Source: Octopus bimaculoides
Lineage: Eukaryota
Length of the DNA: 37,959 bases
NCBI RefSeq assembly: GCF_001194135.2
Contig: NC_068999.1
Location: 50,071,410 to 50,109,368, forward strand
Reading direction: 5' to 3'
Shown here: positions 6,852-37,848 of the stretch, in pieces
Position numbering within the stretch: the first letter of the stretch is position 1
Layout of the letters: every line of letters starts with the position of its first letter
Position numbers and translations under genes: made by a program
Notes under the pieces: model-generated
Seen by the model: the letters and a program-made list of their open reading frames with translations, nothing else
The model's database searches: none
What the model was told of the DNA's origin: nothing

Positions 6852-6985
6852 AGATAGCACGGATACGCTCCTCATTGTTCCATCACAAAGGAAACAGCAG
6901 GGAATCTTTACCCTTACCTGCATCAGATGGTCAAGCAGTCACATTATCACAGAAACTTTATGTACCTGTCAAAGAACACCCTGAT
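6852..6985 (+). CDS. qki: qki exon 2 (phase 1 to 0): (E)IARIRSSLFHHKGNSRESLPLPASDGQAVTLSQKLYVPVKEHPD
   Basis: Acceptor ttctgcag|AG, donor GAT|gtaagt. KLYVPVKEHPD matches QKI KLYVPVKEYPD. Confidence 0.95.
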
Positions 6986-13341: not shown

Positions 13342-13458
13342 TTTAATTTTGTTGGACGAATATTGGGCCCACGAGGGATGACTGCTAAAGAACTTGAACA
13401 ATACACAGGCTGTAAAATCATGGTACGAGGGAAAGGATCAATGCGGGACAAAGTAAAG
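13342..13458 (+). CDS. qki: qki exon 3 (phase 0 to 0), KH GxxG loop: [39 protein letters not shown]
   Basis: Acceptor tgtttcag|TTT, donor AAG|gtaagt, 117 nt, near identity to the QKI/How KH domain. Confidence 0.98.
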
Positions 13459-19736: not shown

Positions 19737-19880
19737 GAGGAGTTGAATCGGGGAAAGCCAAACTGGGAACACTTGAACGAAGAGTTGCATGTACTCATCA
19801 CTGTAGAAGACACACGTAACAGAGCAGAAATCAAGTTACAGAAGGCTGTCGAAGAAGTGAAACGACTATTGGTGCCAGCA
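19737..19880 (+). CDS. qki: qki exon 4 (phase 0 to 0): [48 protein letters not shown]
   Basis: Acceptor tatgcag|GAG, donor GCA|gtaagt, 144 nt, QKI-like [21 protein letters not shown]. Confidence 0.98.
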
Positions 19881-21830: not shown

Positions 21831-22676
21831 CCTAACTTATCACATGAGGCACGAAAGACCCTTAAAAAAAAATTCCTCTCCTGCTAATGTAAGTCGAGCT
21901 ATGTTTCAAAGTAAGTCTTCAATAGCCAAAATGCAGTTATGGACTGACTTGACCTACAGGTCATCCCATAGAAAACCCTTCATCCAGCAATCTGTTCTGT
22001 CTGTGAATGGGTTTCACTTGTGGAAATTCTTAGCCGTACACAGTATGGTTGTGTGATTAACAGGTTCACTTTACAACTACACAGTTCAGTCCTAATGTGT
22101 GACATTTTGCGTAAGTGTCTTCTATAATTTCAAGCTAACCTGTACTCCATGACTGGGATTTGGCACATAGAAATGGTACAGTAGTTCATAATGTGTGTAA
22201 TTGTTTCTTAATATCCTGTCTGTTAGTCTGGTAATCAATAAGATAGGTACTAGAAGTGCTGGGAATGATCGATATATAAATGACTAAATACATGATGAAA
22301 GCAATGTCCTCAGCATAGCTGCAGTCCAATGACCGAAACCAGTCGAAAAATATAGCAAAGTAGTAATATTTGGTATGTGTAATAATGGTGTTTTCCACAT
22401 TTTTATTTTCATTATTTTATTTTTCTGTTCTGTTGAATGTTGTGGTGATTGGAGCCACATCTTTGGAGATTTTAAGGAAATGGGTTAAATGCAAAAAAAA
22501 AAAAAGAAATTTCTTTTTCCTACAAAGCAAAATAATAGAGATTAGTCGTTTATTTGCTTGTATTAGATTTCTAAAACTATTGTTTAAGAATCCTGCAACA
22601 ATTTTTATTACATGCTTCGAGGAAGGACAGTCAACTTGATTCCAAACATGTAAGTAAATCTACATTGTGTGTCATA

Positions 22677-25761: not shown

Positions 25762-26235
25762 TTAAAACACTTCATAAAAGTGAGTGGGGCTTTACAATTT
25801 GAGCTGGGGGTTTTGTTCTAATGGAGAAAACTCTCCTTGGGTAGAAAATATTTTTGATTTTTCNNNNNNNNNNTCCCCCCCCCCCTACCTTTACATTTCA
25901 CTGTTCGTCAGTTTTAATATATTTATTTACAGAATATTTAATATAGCTTAATACTAAAACTTTGACTAGCTGTGTCCAGTTTCTAACAAAACTGTGCCTT
26001 TCCCCCCACAAAGAATCACAATGTTGCTCCTGTATATTTCTCCCATGTTTAATTTCTTACCACCTCCACCAATACTGATGATAGTCTTAACTTTAGATGT
26101 AGTGTGGAATGTTGCTGTTGCTAGAGAAGTTAGTGAGAGGCTGATGTCATCTGCTTCCGTCCAGCCTCAGCTGTAGTCTTTGTATTCTTAGTTTCTTGCA
26201 ATGCTGCCCTACTTCCCACCCATCCCCACTCCACT

Positions 26236-26259
26236 TACTAATTGTTCTTCGCTTCTAAT
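26236..26259 (+). promoter_or_regulatory. Bipartite Quaking response element / branch-point region upstream of exon 5a
   Basis: TACTAAT (26236-26242), a 13-nt spacer and TAAT (26256-26259) fit NACUAAY-N1-20-UAAY. The site is 31-54 nt upstream of the 5a acceptor. Confidence 0.55.
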
Positions 26260-26289
26260 CACCCCTGCACCCCATTTGTTTTCTTTCAG

Positions 26290-26386
26290 CCTGAGGGGGA
26301 GGATGAACTCAAGAAAATGCAATTAATGGAGCTTGCCATCTTAAATGGAACTTACCGGGATTTCAAAACTGGTTCATCCATCCATC
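26290..26386 (+). CDS. qki: qki exon 5a (phase 0 to 1), QUA2 variant A: [32 protein letters not shown] (absent from the ORF track)
   Basis: Acceptor ttctttcag|CCT, donor ATC|gtaagtttg, 97 nt, open frame, QUA2 motif intact. Confidence 0.92.
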
Positions 26387-26403
26387 GTAAGTTTGCTAAA
26401 TAG

Positions 26404-26409
26404 TGCATG
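26404..26409 (+). promoter_or_regulatory. RBFOX element UGCAUG in the 85-nt intron between exons 5a and 5b
   Basis: Exact TGCATG starting at intron position +18 after the 5a donor. Confidence 0.5.
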
Positions 26410-26471
26410 CTGTGTACATACTCTATTAAGTCATGTTGTTTACAACTATGTTCCTTGTGATCCTTTTTCAG

Positions 26472-26586
26472 CCCGAAGGAGAGGATGACTTAAAGAAACG
26501 ACAACTCATGGAGCTAGCTATCATTAACGGCACATATCGTGACACTTCTAAACCATCCGCCTCTGCAGCACAACCTTCCTCCACCC
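26472..26586 (+). CDS. qki: qki exon 5b (phase 0 to 1), QUA2 variant B: [38 protein letters not shown]
   Basis: Acceptor ctttttcag|CCC, donor CCC|gtaagtttg, 115 nt, QUA2 motif intact. Confidence 0.94.
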
Positions 26587-27821
26587 GTAAGTTTGGGAAG
26601 TGCCGTGCAGTTTTAGCTGTGTGTCATGGTTTTTCTGACAGCTTAGGATTCACTCTAGCTGCACCTGCCCTCTTATCTTAGCCTGCAACTTTTTTTTTTT
26701 CCTCTCTCTCTCTTCCTACCCCTTCTTCAACTCCCCCCTCTCCCACTCTGTTTTTTTTCACTCTCCTTGGGCTCCTACTTGCCAGTCTTATTGCCTCGAA
26801 ACATTGTCATTATTCCTGGCCTCCCCCCACTGCTCTATTTCCATTTCTAGGTTGATTTTTTGCTCTTTGAATTTGATTTGTTTTGTTTTTGATTTGACTT
26901 TTTTTTTACCTGAATTTACCTGTAGATGTTCTCAGTGGAACAGATGCGATGACAATCTTCTATGAATTGCTTAGAACAATTTGATCTTTTTGAATTTGGG
27001 GAATGGTGGGCAGTTGAAATTGCTTAGTATATATAAGCTTAAACCTAAATCTGTGATAATTTAATCTGCATGGGAGCCCTGTTATCGCATGTGTTATGTT
27101 TTGGAGTTGCCTTATCCAACAACCAATAGCCTTCTCTGGCTGGCTTTATAGTTCTGATAGACTATTAAAATCTGTCTTGTGCATTTAGTTGCAGTTTTTT
27201 TTTTTGTTTTTTTTTTAAATACTGTGTTTCTAATCCAACCACAGGTTTGCTTGCATGCTAAAAACATGATTGTTCTTTCCTTTTTTTTTCCTTTAATTAA
27301 ACCTAATTAATCGGGTAACATTCAGTAATCAATCACTTCAGGTGTAGTATTGAGGGTTTTAAATTGTTTTGAAACCAATTCCAGGTTAAAATGATAGTTC
27401 TTATAAGGGTCTTTTTTTTTTTTTTTTCACCCCTCCCCTAAGGGTTCTAATTTGATGTTAGATTTTTCTCATAAAATAAAATTGTCTGGTTTTCTTCGTC
27501 ATTTTATAATGAAACATTTAATTAGGGTCTCTTTAAGCTTAATATTGCAAAAATTTGCCTTGGATAGTTTTTGTTATAAATATGTACTGACAGTAATGGT
27601 CAAGGAATCTGCCATAAATAGTGACGGAATTTTAAAAAATTACTGTATAAAACATTTTTATAAAGTTATTTTTAAGACATAAGCAAAAAAACTTGGAAGT
27701 TTTCATTAGTAAAGCTAAGAGTGAATTATTTTAAATTTAGATGAGTGAAAACTGATGGTTAGAGTAATCGCAAAATTGCCATTTTGTAATAGATGAACTT
27801 TGTTGTTTTCCTCATAAACAA

Positions 27822-28197
27822 GGCGCAGGAGTGGCTGTGTGGTAAGTAGCTTGCTTACCAACCACATGGTTTTGGGTTCAGTCCCACTGCATGGCACCTT
27901 GGGCAAGTGTCTTCTGCTCTAGCCTCGGGCCAACCAAAGCCTTGTGAGTAGATTTGGTAGACAGAAACTGAAAGAAGCCCGTTGTATATGTGTGTGTGTG
28001 TGTTTGTCCCCCCAACTTCGCTTGACAATCGATGCTGGTGTGTTTTACATCCCCGTAACCTAGCAGTTCGGCAAAAGAGACCGATAGAATAAGTACCAGG
28101 CTTCCAAAGAATAAGTCCTGGGGTCAATTTGCTCGACTAAAGGTGGTGCTCCAGCATGGCCGCAGTCAAATGACTGAAACGAGTAAAAGAGTGAGTA
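27822..28197 (+). mobile_element. CORE-type SINE, tail type A, full length
   Basis: Same head, CORE and tail as the 15523 copy. Confidence 0.92.
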
Positions 28198-28394
28198 GTG
28201 GAAATGTAAAAATAAATGCATTACATCAGTATTGAAATCCATTTGATTTGTACAGCTGAGTTGAATAGTTCAGTTGTTGGATCACTTGATTTCATGTGTT
28301 GCTGTGAAGAGGATTTTAGGATTAACCCAATGAGAGCATCTGCCAGTAAGATGCTGATGTAGATAGGTACAGGTATGATTGTGTAGTCAAGCAG

Positions 28395-28735
28395 TTTGCT
28401 TCTTAATGACATGGCTTGGGTTCAGAACCATTGTGCAGTACTTGGGCAAGTGCCTTCTATTATTGCCCTAGGATGATTAGATCTTTGTAGATTTTGATAA
28501 ATGGAAACTAAGAGAAGACTTGTGTGAGTGGAGTTCTTGGCAACAAGCAATGGTTATGAATGTCACTGTCATGTAAGCAGTGTCCTTAGTTTCTAATCTG
28601 ACATGGACATGTATCAGGTCATTGGAAAATATTACATTGCTTGGAAACGAGCAAGGACAACCGGCTGAGAAAATCTGCCTCAATGAATTTTGTCTGACTC
28701 ATGCAAGCATGGAAAAGTGGACATTAAAATGATTA
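28395..28735 (+). mobile_element. CORE-type SINE, tail type B, diverged
   Basis: CTTGGGCAAGTGCCTTCT...TTGCTTGGAAAC...GAAAATCTGCC...CATGCAAGCATGGAAAAGTGGACATTAAA. Confidence 0.75.
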
Positions 28736-28819: not shown

Positions 28820-29035
28820 AGGTGGTGAGCTGGCAGAATTGTTACTGTGCCAGGTGAAATGCTTAGCAACATTTTGCCCTTCTTCATGTTCTGAGTTCAA
28901 ATTTTGCCTAGGTTAACTTTGCCTTTCATTTTTTCAGGGTTGATAAAATAAGTACCAGTTGAGTACTGGGGTCAATGTAATAAACTTACCCCCTGCCCTG
29001 AAACTGCTGGTTTTGTGCCAAAATTTGAGAGCAAT
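28820..29035 (+). mobile_element. Second SINE family (GGTGGTGAGCTGGCAGAA head)
   Basis: tRNA-like head, CTGAGTTCAAAT, TTTGCCTTTCAT...GATAAAATAAGTACCAG. Colinear with the 34950 copy. Confidence 0.85.
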
Positions 29036-29882
29036 ATTGAATTCTTGAAATTCATTAGTAATTTTTTGGCTTTTCCTCTCCATTGTTTATATGTTGAATC
29101 TACAAATATGCTTCCTTATAGAAATATTTTGTTTGTGGAGGGGCCGATTAATTGTTCAGTGTGTGTGTGTGTGTGCGCGCGCACTTGCGCGTGTGCTATA
29201 TGGAAAATAATAAACAGATTCTAGATCACTTCATTCTTTGACATTCTCTCCTGTTTCTTCTGTTGTATGTCTCTTGCCATATAATGGCCTTGCAAATAGG
29301 CAGCAGGACTGGCTAAATTTTATTTCTAATAAACTTGCTTTCCAATCTCTTGTCACACTTATTCCCTACTTATTCCTATGTTGTTTTCCCCTAAGCATTT
29401 CCTTTTTAGGATTTTTAACATTTACATGAACTTCTCTTAGTCTCTACTATTCTTCTCCTCCTTCTTTCTCCTTTCACAATTTCCTGTTTTGGTGAATTCC
29501 AAGGTCTCTCTACTCTATTAAGCTGTTGACTATAGACTTTTCATTCCATGAAATGGTTTTGTTTCTTCAAGAAAGTTTTCCAAATGAAACTTTAAAACAG
29601 CAAGCAGCTGAAATTACTTCCATTTGAAATGAAATGATTTAAAAGGAACAAAAAAAAAAAAAAAATTGATTATAATTTTCTATTGTTTTTCTGAAGATTA
29701 ATTGTAACATTCAGTAATTTTAATAATCAATGACATTAATATCAAGAACAGCATATATTTAGTTTTGACAGCTGAGATATATGATGTATTTTTATGCAAG
29801 TTATAATATAATGTGCTACATGTTAAATGAAAACTTTTGCTAGCTCCTAATGTCGTTAGACGTTGACTGAAAAGTTTAAAAG

Positions 29883-31046: not shown

Positions 31047-31166
31047 ATATGTCTGCCGATGGAAGTGGCCTCAGCGGTTTGAATATCCCGACGAGTGCGG
31101 GCTGCCCCCTGGTTGTTGGCAACCAGCTCTCCTCCTTTGATCAGGTGATAGCTTCCAAATTTTCGG
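31047..31166 (+). CDS. qki: Putative symmetric cassette exon (phase 1 to 1, 120 nt): (H)MSADGSGLSGLNIPTSAGCPLVVGNQLSSFDQVIASKFS(E)
   Basis: GC- and CpG-richer island in an AT-rich intron, acceptor aatcag|AT, donor TCGG|gtaaga. Length divisible by 3, no stop, phases fit between exons 5 and 6. No recognised homology. Confidence 0.6.
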
Positions 31167-32332
31167 GTAAGAACCCTTTTCTTTTCTCTCGTCTTTAATA
31201 TTAGCATGACCCTCAAGGCCATTCTTTAAAACAATCTTTTCCTTTCCTCTGACCTTAGGGATCTAGTTATTTTGTCCTCCCTATAGACAGTAATGAGGAA
31301 TTTGTATAATTGGGTGCTAAGGTAATGGTTTAGTTGTATATATGTACAGTATTTGTATTTGCTATATCTCCGCTTTTAAATTTAATATAAAAGAATTTTC
31401 ATCTTGTATGTCTGAAGCAGTTGTTGGTTATTTGATTTTCAAGGACACAGAAATAAACACAATTGATACATCATTTGTTTGTTATTTAACCCCACCCCAC
31501 AAAAATCTAAAATTTCTGACCTTTTCTTGGTACTGTAATATATTTGGTGCTTCGAGATCCTTACCTTTGATGCAGACCTAAAACCAAATTGAAGAAGTCG
31601 ACTGATACTTATTAAAAAGATAGTTTTTACACATACAGATTGGAAAAACAAAAAAAATGGTTTACTCATATAGATTCAACTTAAACTATTTGAAAGCTAA
31701 AACATAACTTACTTATACAAATGTATTTTCTGTGTGTGTGTGTGTGTGTGTGCGTGTGTGTGTTAACATTTTACTAAATCATGGCCCTTGAATGCTCCAA
31801 ACTAGGGATTTTTATTAACACCTAGTTTTTCCATTAAAAAATTTTTTTAAATTCATCCAGTGCTCCTTTCTCCCAGCAATGGCTGTTGGTTTAATTTTCT
31901 TTATTCTGCATTTTAATGTTTTAAATTTGTAGCTTTTAAAAAAAAAAAAAAAAATTTTTTTATAAAAAAAATGTTAGTATTTTAATAAAAAAAAAAATCT
32001 AAAATCTGAATATTTTTGTCATAAATAACTCTTAATNNNNNNNNNNATAAAAAAAATGTTAGTATTTTAATAAAAAAAAAAATCTAAAATCTGAATATTT
32101 TTGTCATAAATAACTCTTAATTGATAAACTTTGTCTTAATTTGTAATATCAATTGTAATTGTCCATTTAAAACTATAATTATTAAAGAATTTAATTAGTC
32201 TTAAATTTGTATTTTTTTCATTTCATATGTTGCATTGTTTTCATTTTTTTTTTTTTGTTCTTTCTGATAACTTTTTCTTTTCATTGAATTTCCTAAGAAA
32301 CTTGGAATATAACTTAAATACTTTTCTTTCAG

Positions 32333-32584
32333 AAGCTCCTCGAATGTGTGCTCCTCCGTTGACCATTCCACAGCTTCGTGCCGCTAACCCCAGCGGTGGT
32401 CAAATCATCCTAACACCTCGCCTACCTTCAGTTGCTACAAGCACAGGCATACTAAATGGTGCACCGCCACCCCTCGTTTCTCCGCCAGATCCTAACCTGA
32501 TGTACAACCCTTATGAATACCCATATGCACTGGCAGCACACACTGCAATTTTGGAATATCCAACCATAGATCAAACTCAAACTG
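32333..32584 (+). CDS. qki: qki exon 6 (phase 1 to 1): APRMCAPPLTIPQLRAANPSGGQIILTPRLPSVATSTGILNGAPPPLVSPPDPNLMYNPYEYPYALAAHTAILEYPTIDQTQT(G)
   Basis: Acceptor ttttctttcag|AA, donor CTG|gtatgc, 252 nt. The YxPYEYPY and ILEYP motifs are typical of the QKI C-terminal region. Confidence 0.93.
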
Positions 32585-32604
32585 GTATGCCTTTTGTCAG
32601 ATAG
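32585..32604 (+). CDS. qki: Putative short-isoform C-terminus by read-through of the exon 6 donor: (G)MPFVR*
   Basis: The frame continues G|GT ATG CCT TTT GTC AGA TAG and resembles short QKI/How tails. No transcript evidence. Confidence 0.5.
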
Positions 32605-37774: not shown

Positions 37775-37848
37775 GTCCTATTCCTAAAATCAGGAGAACA
37801 CTCTCTGGTGTCAGAGAACACCCTTACAATAGGGTGGCTCTCCCCTGA
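37775..37848 (+). CDS. qki: qki long-isoform last coding exon: (G)PIPKIRRTLSGVREHPYNRVALP* (absent from the ORF track)
   Basis: Acceptor ttattgtag|GT in phase 1 matches the exon 6 donor. Basic residues plus REHPYNR match the STAR RxHPY(Q/G)R NLS motif of QKI-5/How(L). TGA at 37846-37848. Confidence 0.9.

Follow-up and report, generated by a model that had tools for sequence, protein, structure and literature searches.

A tandem pair of probably mutually exclusive QUA2 exons in the QKI/How gene of Octopus bimaculoides and its occurrence among lophotrochozoans

Introduction

The RNA-binding proteins Quaking (QKI) of vertebrates, How of insects, and GLD-1 of nematodes play a major part in the control of splicing, mRNA stability, and translation in glia, muscle, and the germline. 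In vertebrates, the isoform diversity of QKI (QKI-5, QKI-6, and QKI-7) is generated at the 3' end, and, to our knowledge, the known isoform diversity of QKI, How, and GLD-1 lies in the C-terminal tails and not in the RNA-binding domain. Here, we describe the orthologous gene of Octopus bimaculoides within a stretch of 37,959 nucleotides (nt) of assembly GCF_001194135.2 (contig NC_068999.1, positions 50,071,410 to 50,109,368 of the forward strand; the whole stretch is called the window hereafter, and coordinates refer to it). This gene carries two adjacent versions, 5a and 5b, of the exon for the QUA2 helix, which together occupy exactly positions 26290-26586, from the start of 5a to the end of 5b.

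The vertebrate proteins (human and mouse QKI, PDB 4JVH; Xenopus, PDB 2BL5) are, like the octopus one, STAR/GSG proteins with a QUA1-KH-QUA2 layout, are 80-85% identical to it across the KH exons, have the intron before EGED at the same position, and share M192 and L200 (QKI numbering) with 5a. They differ in that one exon-5 type is present in all isoforms seen, with no mutually exclusive QUA2 exons among them. Insect How and nematode GLD-1/ASD-2 (PDB 4JVY and 2MJH) belong to the same family; a single D/E difference separates the core of 5b from the arthropod core, and GLD-1 has K and II at the two diagnostic sites. This lineage also differs from the octopus, as its mite and nematomorph loci hold a single exon and the insect isoform sets seen contain one type.

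Alpha-tropomyosin exons 2/3 and SNAP25 exons 5a/5b are classical mutually exclusive exon pairs that arose by tandem duplication. A further member of this class, OGDH 4a/4b, consists, like the octopus pair, of adjacent homologous exons of the same phase and similar length separated by a short intron (PMC7969005). The octopus pair also has in common with this class the frame incompatibility that results when both exons or neither are used, deep conservation, and conserved flanking introns. It differs from the classical pairs in the module that is swapped, which is the RNA-recognition helix of a regulator of splicing and translation.

Two versions of the QUA2 exon in one gene

The gene in the window is the O. 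bimaculoides orthologue of vertebrate QKI and insect How, and lies on the plus strand. Its exons were located by a tblastn search with QKI, in which 5a and 5b were hit with E values of 5e-9 and 2e-8, and splice sites and reading frames were read straight off the window sequence. Models spliced from these coordinates equal the O. bimaculoides isoforms P0001, P0002, and P0006 residue for residue. The product matches PF22675 (1.4e-17) and also PF00013, a type I KH domain with the GPRG loop encoded by exon 3, and the closest solved structures are QKI 4JVH (E = 8e-73) and GLD-1 4JVY. The database isoforms that match carry the QUA1 domain (PF16544, STAR_dimer), and the window exons equal those isoforms from exon 2 onward. 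Binding of ACUAAY-type RNA by the octopus protein would be expected from the contact residues that are kept.

Exon 5a (26290..26386, plus strand, 97 nt) encodes one variant of the QUA2 helix followed by the short tail FKTGSSIH, and exon 5b (26472..26586, plus strand, 115 nt) encodes the other, followed by a tail rich in Ser, Thr, and Pro. They are separated by an intron of 85 nt (26387..26471, plus strand). The acceptor of 5a reads ...ttctttcag and that of 5b ...cctttttcag, and both have the donor gtaagt. Both exon lengths are 1 mod 3 and both exons have the same phase, and translated splice models in which 5a and 5b are joined to each other, or in which both are left out, run into a frameshift and premature stops. 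The 25-residue cores are identical at 21 of 25 positions, the differences being E/D, M/R, L/I, and F/T, with the M/R site corresponding to QKI M192 and the L/I site to QKI L200 (numbering checked). At the nucleotide level, the cores share only 68% identity and most synonymous sites differ, which argues that the duplication is old.

At the M and L sites, 5a is the same as human QKI (PDB 4JVH), and the 5b core is that of many insect How orthologues, although the insects seen have S, not T, after RD. The only difference between a-type and b-type exons that is constant across phyla is the tail: b tails read DT(S/T)KP followed by a stretch rich in Ser, Thr, Pro, and Gln, and a tails are short and variable.

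RNA evidence for alternative use

RNA evidence was taken from assembled contigs, the unaligned ends of which were matched back to the window sequence. In four runs from the source species (X46-X49), contigs end exactly at 26290-26386 and at 26472-26586. On its 5' side, either exon is joined to the last bases of exon 4 (...GTGCCAGCA, 19851-19880) or of a 36-nt microexon (22620-22649), and on its 3' side to the start of exon 6 (ATATGTCTGCC..., 31047). The exon 4 end ...GTGCCAGCA is found joined to 26290, to 26472, and to the microexon start at 22614, and a single contig connects 5a directly with 31047-31166. The same joints for each exon are present in a second octopus species (X33 and X36), and in X36, 5b is also joined straight to exon 7, exon 6 being skipped.

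No joint between 5a and 5b was found among the contigs of 12 RNA runs, that is, the splicing-out of the 85-nt intron was not seen in the runs examined. Exon 5a occurs with exact boundaries in 10 runs from two octopus species, and 5b in six of these; X26, X27, X30, and X31 have 5a contigs and no 5b contig, and in the six runs with both exons, the depth ratios range from about 0.2 to 1.8. Since four runs are 5a-only and the other six differ in ratio, the usage of the two exons varies between samples. Given that no 5a-5b joint was seen and that the use of both or neither shifts the frame, 5a and 5b are in all likelihood mutually exclusive, tandemly duplicated alternative exons.

These results bear out an earlier note on this locus, made from the DNA letters, in several respects. 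It had taken 5a and 5b for alternative versions of one exon, as is now supported by the RNA contigs, by the homology of the two AG/GT-flanked exons, and by the frame, and its placing of the M/R site between the equivalents of K190 and Q193 is correct, both contacts being kept in 5a and 5b. The likeness of 5a to human QKI holds at the M and L sites. The likeness of 5b to Drosophila How holds for the core when many insect orthologues are compared, with the difference that these have S rather than T after RD. That the duplication is old, as it had proposed, agrees with the 68% nucleotide identity and with the occurrence of the pair in both molluscs and an annelid.

Distribution of the exon pair in animals

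Isoforms of both the a type and the b type are found within single species of oysters, mussels, scallops, Mya, Littorina, Gigantopelta, Babylonia, and Biomphalaria. In the genome of Lottia, the two exons stand in tandem (5a, 118 nt; intron, 76 nt; 5b, 121 nt), in the same order and phase as in the octopus. The pair extends beyond molluscs, as the annelid Dimorphilus gyrociliatus, which has a compact genome, has an annotated gene (DgyrCDS532) that uses only an a-type exon of 124 nt, and an intact but unannotated b-type exon of 118 nt lies in the annotated intron of this gene, 229 nt past 5a, flanked by AG and GT and in the same phase (locus L003, 7119-7236, of CAJFCJ010000001.1). Across the octopus, Lottia, and Dimorphilus, each of the six exons has a length of 1 mod 3, and a precedes b in all three species. 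In addition, an a-type transcript (P0072) and a b-type transcript (P0063) come from a non-mollusc, spiralian-like clade; in a neighbour-joining tree of the constant region, which is weak evidence, the spiralian-like transcripts stand beside, not inside, the named molluscs.

Outside this group, a second copy of exon 5 was looked for in the whole QKI/How loci of Anneissia (a crinoid; 45.6 kb), Dinothrombium (a mite), Gordionus (a nematomorph), and Seison (a rotifer), and each of them holds a single copy. Isoform sets likewise contain one exon-5 type in insects (often with 5-10 isoforms per species), chelicerates, a centipede, and a barnacle, as well as in sea stars, a sea urchin, a sea cucumber, a brittle star, hemichordates, amphioxus, and dozens of vertebrates. 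Amphioxus, a chiton, nemerteans, and the brittle star Amphiura were assessed from proteins only.

Since molluscs and Dimorphilus both hold the pair, it is older than the split between molluscs and annelids. The simplest reading is that the duplication happened once, in the lophotrochozoan stem before this split, a single origin that we infer and that is favoured because one gain is more parsimonious than an older origin followed by two or three losses.

The automatic RefSeq annotation predicts both exon types, without interpretation, as isoforms X1...X17 in Octopus, oysters, mussels, scallops, and snails, and a literature search found no paper on mutually exclusive QUA2 exons in QKI or How. 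Several mollusc models (P0016, P0017, P0027, and P0284 from oysters, together with P0042, P0086, and P0098) include both exons or part of the intron between them. In P0016, P0017, P0027, and P0284, the exons follow each other in the order a then b. Read-through models of this kind, which would give a protein two QUA2 helices, are probably annotation errors.

Ancestral and derived states at sites 192 and 200

The two sites at which 5a resembles vertebrate QKI and 5b resembles insect How are labile. Site 192 is R in arthropods, sea stars, the crinoid, the sea urchin, and amphioxus; K in nematodes, the tunicate Styela, and the sea cucumber; G in hemichordates; M in vertebrates, the nematomorph Gordionus, and the dicyemid Dicyema; and L or I in several spiralian transcripts and Helobdella. 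Site 200 flips among I, L, and M. Taking both sites together, the state is R/IL in amphioxus, K/II in Styela, M/IL in vertebrates, G/IL in hemichordates, and M/IL in Gordionus and Dicyema. The chordate series of R/IL, K/II, and M/IL indicates that the vertebrate state arose inside a lineage with a single exon.

The two copies evolve differently in the spiralians. The 5b core is invariant in 30 spiralian sequences, and 5a varies at five core positions. Site 192 of 5a is M in bivalves, cephalopods, and the annelid and K or R in gastropods. The combination of R or K with II is widespread, occurring in arthropods, sea stars, the crinoid, nematodes, and the tunicate, and 5b keeps this "KKRQ..II" core, with one D/E difference from the arthropod core. 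Judged from the sequences compared, 5b is the conservative copy, with the common ancestral bilaterian state (Arg192 and Ile200), and its likeness to insect How would be a shared ancestral state and not a special relationship. In turn, 5a is best read as a derived, faster-evolving copy, and its match to vertebrate QKI at M and L as convergence at two non-contact positions, because M together with IL also arose in single-exon lineages (vertebrates, the nematomorph, and the dicyemid).

RNA contacts and the two protein isoforms

In the crystal structure of QKI with RNA, the QUA2 residues that contact RNA are K190, Q193, L194, L197, A198, T203, and Y204 (PMC6847458), and K190 and Q193 are recorded as RNA contacts elsewhere as well (PMC5626755). 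In GLD-1, K313, R314, L317, A321, and R328 touch RNA, and D310 and L320 hold the interface between KH and QUA2 (PMC4081071). 5a and 5b agree at all seven QKI contacts (7/7) and at the listed GLD-1 residues, neither M192 nor L200 is among the listed contacts, and three of the core differences between 5a and 5b adjoin contact residues without falling on them. AlphaFold2 models of a matched pair of a and b isoforms have the same QUA2 helix (about residues 178-193), followed by tails that are disordered in both (pLDDT below 50 from residue 201). An extension of the helix by the 5a tail was considered and is not supported, given the same helix limits and the disordered tails. A change in core RNA specificity between the isoforms therefore appears unlikely. 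Any functional difference would most likely amount to a modest change in affinity or to regulation that depends on the linker, and not to a new RNA specificity. A modest effect on affinity is plausible because a positive charge is lost next to K190/K191.

Constraint on the flanking introns

The introns around the pair are far more constrained than the sequence next to them. In four other octopus species, 19 substitutions were found in the 223 nt of 26000-26222, and only one substitution and one 3-nt deletion in the 255 intronic nt of 26223-26689 (Poisson, 8e-9). Both of these changes are in the 85-nt intron at 26387-26471. The blocks 5' of 5a (26223..26289, plus strand) and 3' of 5b (26587..26689, plus strand) are invariant, the latter with zero differences in the four species, and the DNA runs of the same species have zero changes in 5a and 5b themselves. 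Since they are nearly invariant compared with the adjacent 223 nt, the flanking and separating introns are under strong purifying selection, a pattern that regulated alternative exons would be expected to show.

The RNA fold of the 468-nt conserved block is no better than that of shuffled sequences (z = +0.6). The only perfect inverted repeat has arms of 9 nt (26426-26434 and 26485-26493; TTAAGTCAT / ATGACTTAA), and a hairpin formed by it would enclose the 5b acceptor; with about 0.7 such repeats expected by chance, it was rejected as evidence. In the invariant block upstream of 5a, ACTAAT (26237-26242) is followed 12 nt on by CTAAT (26255-26259), 31-53 nt upstream of the 5a acceptor. This arrangement fits both the branch-point consensus and a bipartite QKI site, and the protein might thus regulate its own exon choice. 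Lottia has a similar ACTAAC...CTAAC pair upstream of 5b instead, and the arrangement is not obviously conserved.

Weighing the explanations

The explanation that we favour is as follows. The spliceosome would connect either exon 4 or the 36-nt microexon with 5a or 5b, never with both, and would continue from there to exon 6 or 7; the exon chosen would supply the whole QUA2 helix and the start of the disordered C-terminal linker. A transcript that contained both exons or neither would be frameshifted with early stops and is presumably removed by nonsense-mediated decay, and the 85-nt intron may also sterically hinder splicing from 5a to 5b. Of the mechanisms that may enforce exclusivity, frame incompatibility is the only one demonstrated; steric hindrance and decay we infer. 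The choice, which appears to vary between samples, is probably set by the near-invariant introns that flank and separate the exons. One duplication in the lophotrochozoan stem would have been followed by the freezing of 5b with its ancestral core and Ser/Thr/Pro-rich tail, and by the divergence of 5a, with a hydrophobic or variable residue at 192, L, I, or M at 200, and a fast-changing tail. For this explanation as a whole, namely an exclusive exon pair of single lophotrochozoan origin with 5b ancestral and 5a convergent with vertebrates, we estimate a probability of roughly 0.8, drawing on the observed exon structure, RNA usage, frame logic, phylogenetic distribution, and intron conservation.

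The earlier note had proposed, as one of two possibilities, that the duplication predates the protostome-deuterostome split, with reciprocal loss in vertebrates and insects. Vertebrates would then have kept the 5a type, insects the 5b type, and lophotrochozoans both. The matches of 5a with human QKI at M192/L200 and of 5b with insect How at R/I would follow naturally from such a history, as would the great age of the pair, which lies before the mollusc-annelid split. Nevertheless, molluscs and one annelid are the only animals in which the pair has turned up: a second exon is missing from the loci of the crinoid, the mite, the nematomorph, and the rotifer, and a single type makes up each of the isoform sets seen in insects, chelicerates, echinoderms, hemichordates, amphioxus, and vertebrates. 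The sites on which the proposal relied are labile elsewhere, with the chordate series making the vertebrate state a derived one within a single-exon lineage, with M/IL also present in Gordionus and Dicyema, and with K or R in gastropod 5a. Retention from the bilaterian ancestor further requires no fewer than two or three independent losses, where a lophotrochozoan origin needs a single gain, and we regard it as quite improbable. The alternative that the note had offered, convergence of the two states, is supported for 5a, given that M and L also occur in vertebrates, the nematomorph, and the dicyemid, all with a single exon. The duplication is, however, not restricted to cephalopods or to molluscs, the outcome that the note had named as speaking against great antiquity, because the annelid Dimorphilus has the pair. 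The possibility that exon 5 was doubled independently in molluscs and annelids, with a coincidental likeness of the a and b copies, is more remote still. Exons are often duplicated in tandem, the intron between the two copies measures 229 nt in Dimorphilus versus 76-85 nt in molluscs (85 nt in the octopus and 76 nt in Lottia), and the nucleotide identities between the octopus and Dimorphilus exons (0.62-0.75) have no clean a-a and b-b pairing. Such parallel events would nonetheless have to produce the same phase, an a copy upstream of the b copy in every case, lengths that are all 1 mod 3, a frozen core shared by the b copies, a hydrophobic residue at 192 in the a copies of the annelid, bivalves, and cephalopods, and a- and b-type transcripts in a further non-mollusc spiralian-like clade.

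With regard to function, the 5a and 5b proteins might differ in RNA sequence specificity and not just in affinity or regulation. What is exchanged is the QUA2 helix, the element that recognizes the 5' nucleotides of the site, and in GLD-1, a swap of the neighbouring K/R pair shifts affinity 11-fold (PMC4081071); moreover, R versus M alters the charge next to K190/K191, and the fact that 5a and 5b are both strongly conserved implies that neither is dispensable. On the other hand, 5a and 5b do not differ at any reported RNA contact of QKI or GLD-1, M192 and L200 not being listed; AlphaFold2 gives the same helix (with limits also put at about residues 180-192) and disordered tails for both; and in gastropods, 5a is back to K or R and yet the pair is kept, the constant difference between a and b being the tail and not the helix. 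A switch in specificity is accordingly doubtful, though less so than either of the two alternative histories above. A more far-reaching scenario is conceivable but rather unlikely, in which Lophotrochozoa would have had a two-state Quaking system for more than half a billion years, with isoforms that have different RNA target ranges and a choice set by ultraconserved introns, perhaps with feedback from QKI through ACUAAU...CUAAU. A further variant of it, to which we give equally little weight, would derive the pair from the bilaterian ancestor, with losses in Ecdysozoa and Deuterostomia.

Returning to the exclusive pair of lophotrochozoan origin, several points weigh against it. The RNA evidence consists of contigs, not reads, so that rare forms with 5a joined to 5b or with both skipped can be missed, and abundances are rough. 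For other mutually exclusive exon pairs, a steric limit of roughly 50 nt has been discussed (PMC7969005), and the likeliest branch points, at about 43-59 nt from the 5a donor, are borderline with respect to this threshold. Neither an RNA structure nor a specific regulator that would account for the choice between 5a and 5b was found. The Dimorphilus 5b exon is known from genomic sequence alone. The absence of the pair outside Lophotrochozoa rests on four genomic loci together with annotation, a thin genomic sampling, and brachiopods, nemertean genomes, flatworms, priapulids, amphioxus genomic DNA, and cnidarians lay outside the survey. Finally, about 24 conserved residues and saturated synonymous sites cannot resolve an exon-level tree.

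Other exons and further alternative splicing

The remaining exons of the gene are all on the plus strand. Exon 2 (6852..6985) encodes the end of QUA1 and the linker, its limits being supported by tblastn to QKI, by splice sites and frame, and by the spliced model that equals P0001; the exon 1 peptide was searched for in the window and not found, and exon 1 is placed upstream of it. Exon 3 (13342..13458) encodes the KH domain with the GPRG loop (PF22675). Exon 4 (19737..19880) encodes the second half of KH, ends in ...LLVPA, and is the shared upstream partner of 5a, 5b, and the microexon. Two annotated isoforms, P0004 (O. bimaculoides X12) and P0012 (O. sinensis X17), skip this exon, which is 144 nt long and in frame; skipping it would delete the second half of the KH domain.

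The microexon (22614..22649; ASRKDSQLDSKH) is a 36-nt cassette that lengthens the linker between KH and QUA2 and combines with either 5a or 5b. It is seen in RNA contigs of X46, X47, X49, X27, and X31, and its inclusion reproduces isoforms P0002 and P0006. Whichever register is chosen, the window has AT instead of AG immediately in front of it, so its acceptor looks non-canonical, unless the assembly differs from the expressed allele.

Exon 6 (31047..31166), the shared downstream partner of 5a and 5b, is a skippable cassette of 120 nt. Exon 7 (32333..32584) encodes the Pro-rich C-terminal region with a PYEYPY motif and has alternative acceptors: a NAGNAG acceptor at 32333/32336 adds or drops one Glu, and an upstream one near 32296 adds RNLEYNLNTFLS. 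Read-through of the exon 7 donor (32585-32604) would give a short C-terminus, G-MPFVR-stop, without the REHPYNR motif, and similar tails (GTSYVR, GTSYMR, and GMGYVR) are found in transcripts of other spiralians, which suggests a conserved short isoform. The last coding exon (37775..37848) encodes GPIPKIRRTLSGVREHPYNRVALP*.

Elsewhere in the introns, the segments 27660-28412, 28915-29165, and 31676-31926 are covered by RNA contigs at depths of 10,000-100,000 and show chimeric joints by the hundred, as is characteristic of interspersed elements that are highly repeated and transcribed. Scans of the whole window for Rfam families and tRNAs gave no matches.

Significance

Two practical consequences follow for annotation and comparison. 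The annelid b-type exon should be added to its gene model, and several oyster read-through models should be corrected. The locus also calls for caution, as the likeness of each exon to the vertebrate or insect orthologues at two residues turned into a mixture of ancestral state and convergence once more taxa were sampled. For the QKI/How family itself, the finding would mean that molluscs and annelids, at least, alternate the QUA2 recognition helix by mutually exclusive splicing, with both copies and their flanking introns strongly constrained, and the exon pair may serve as a natural experiment on the role of the non-contact face of QUA2 and of the adjoining linker.

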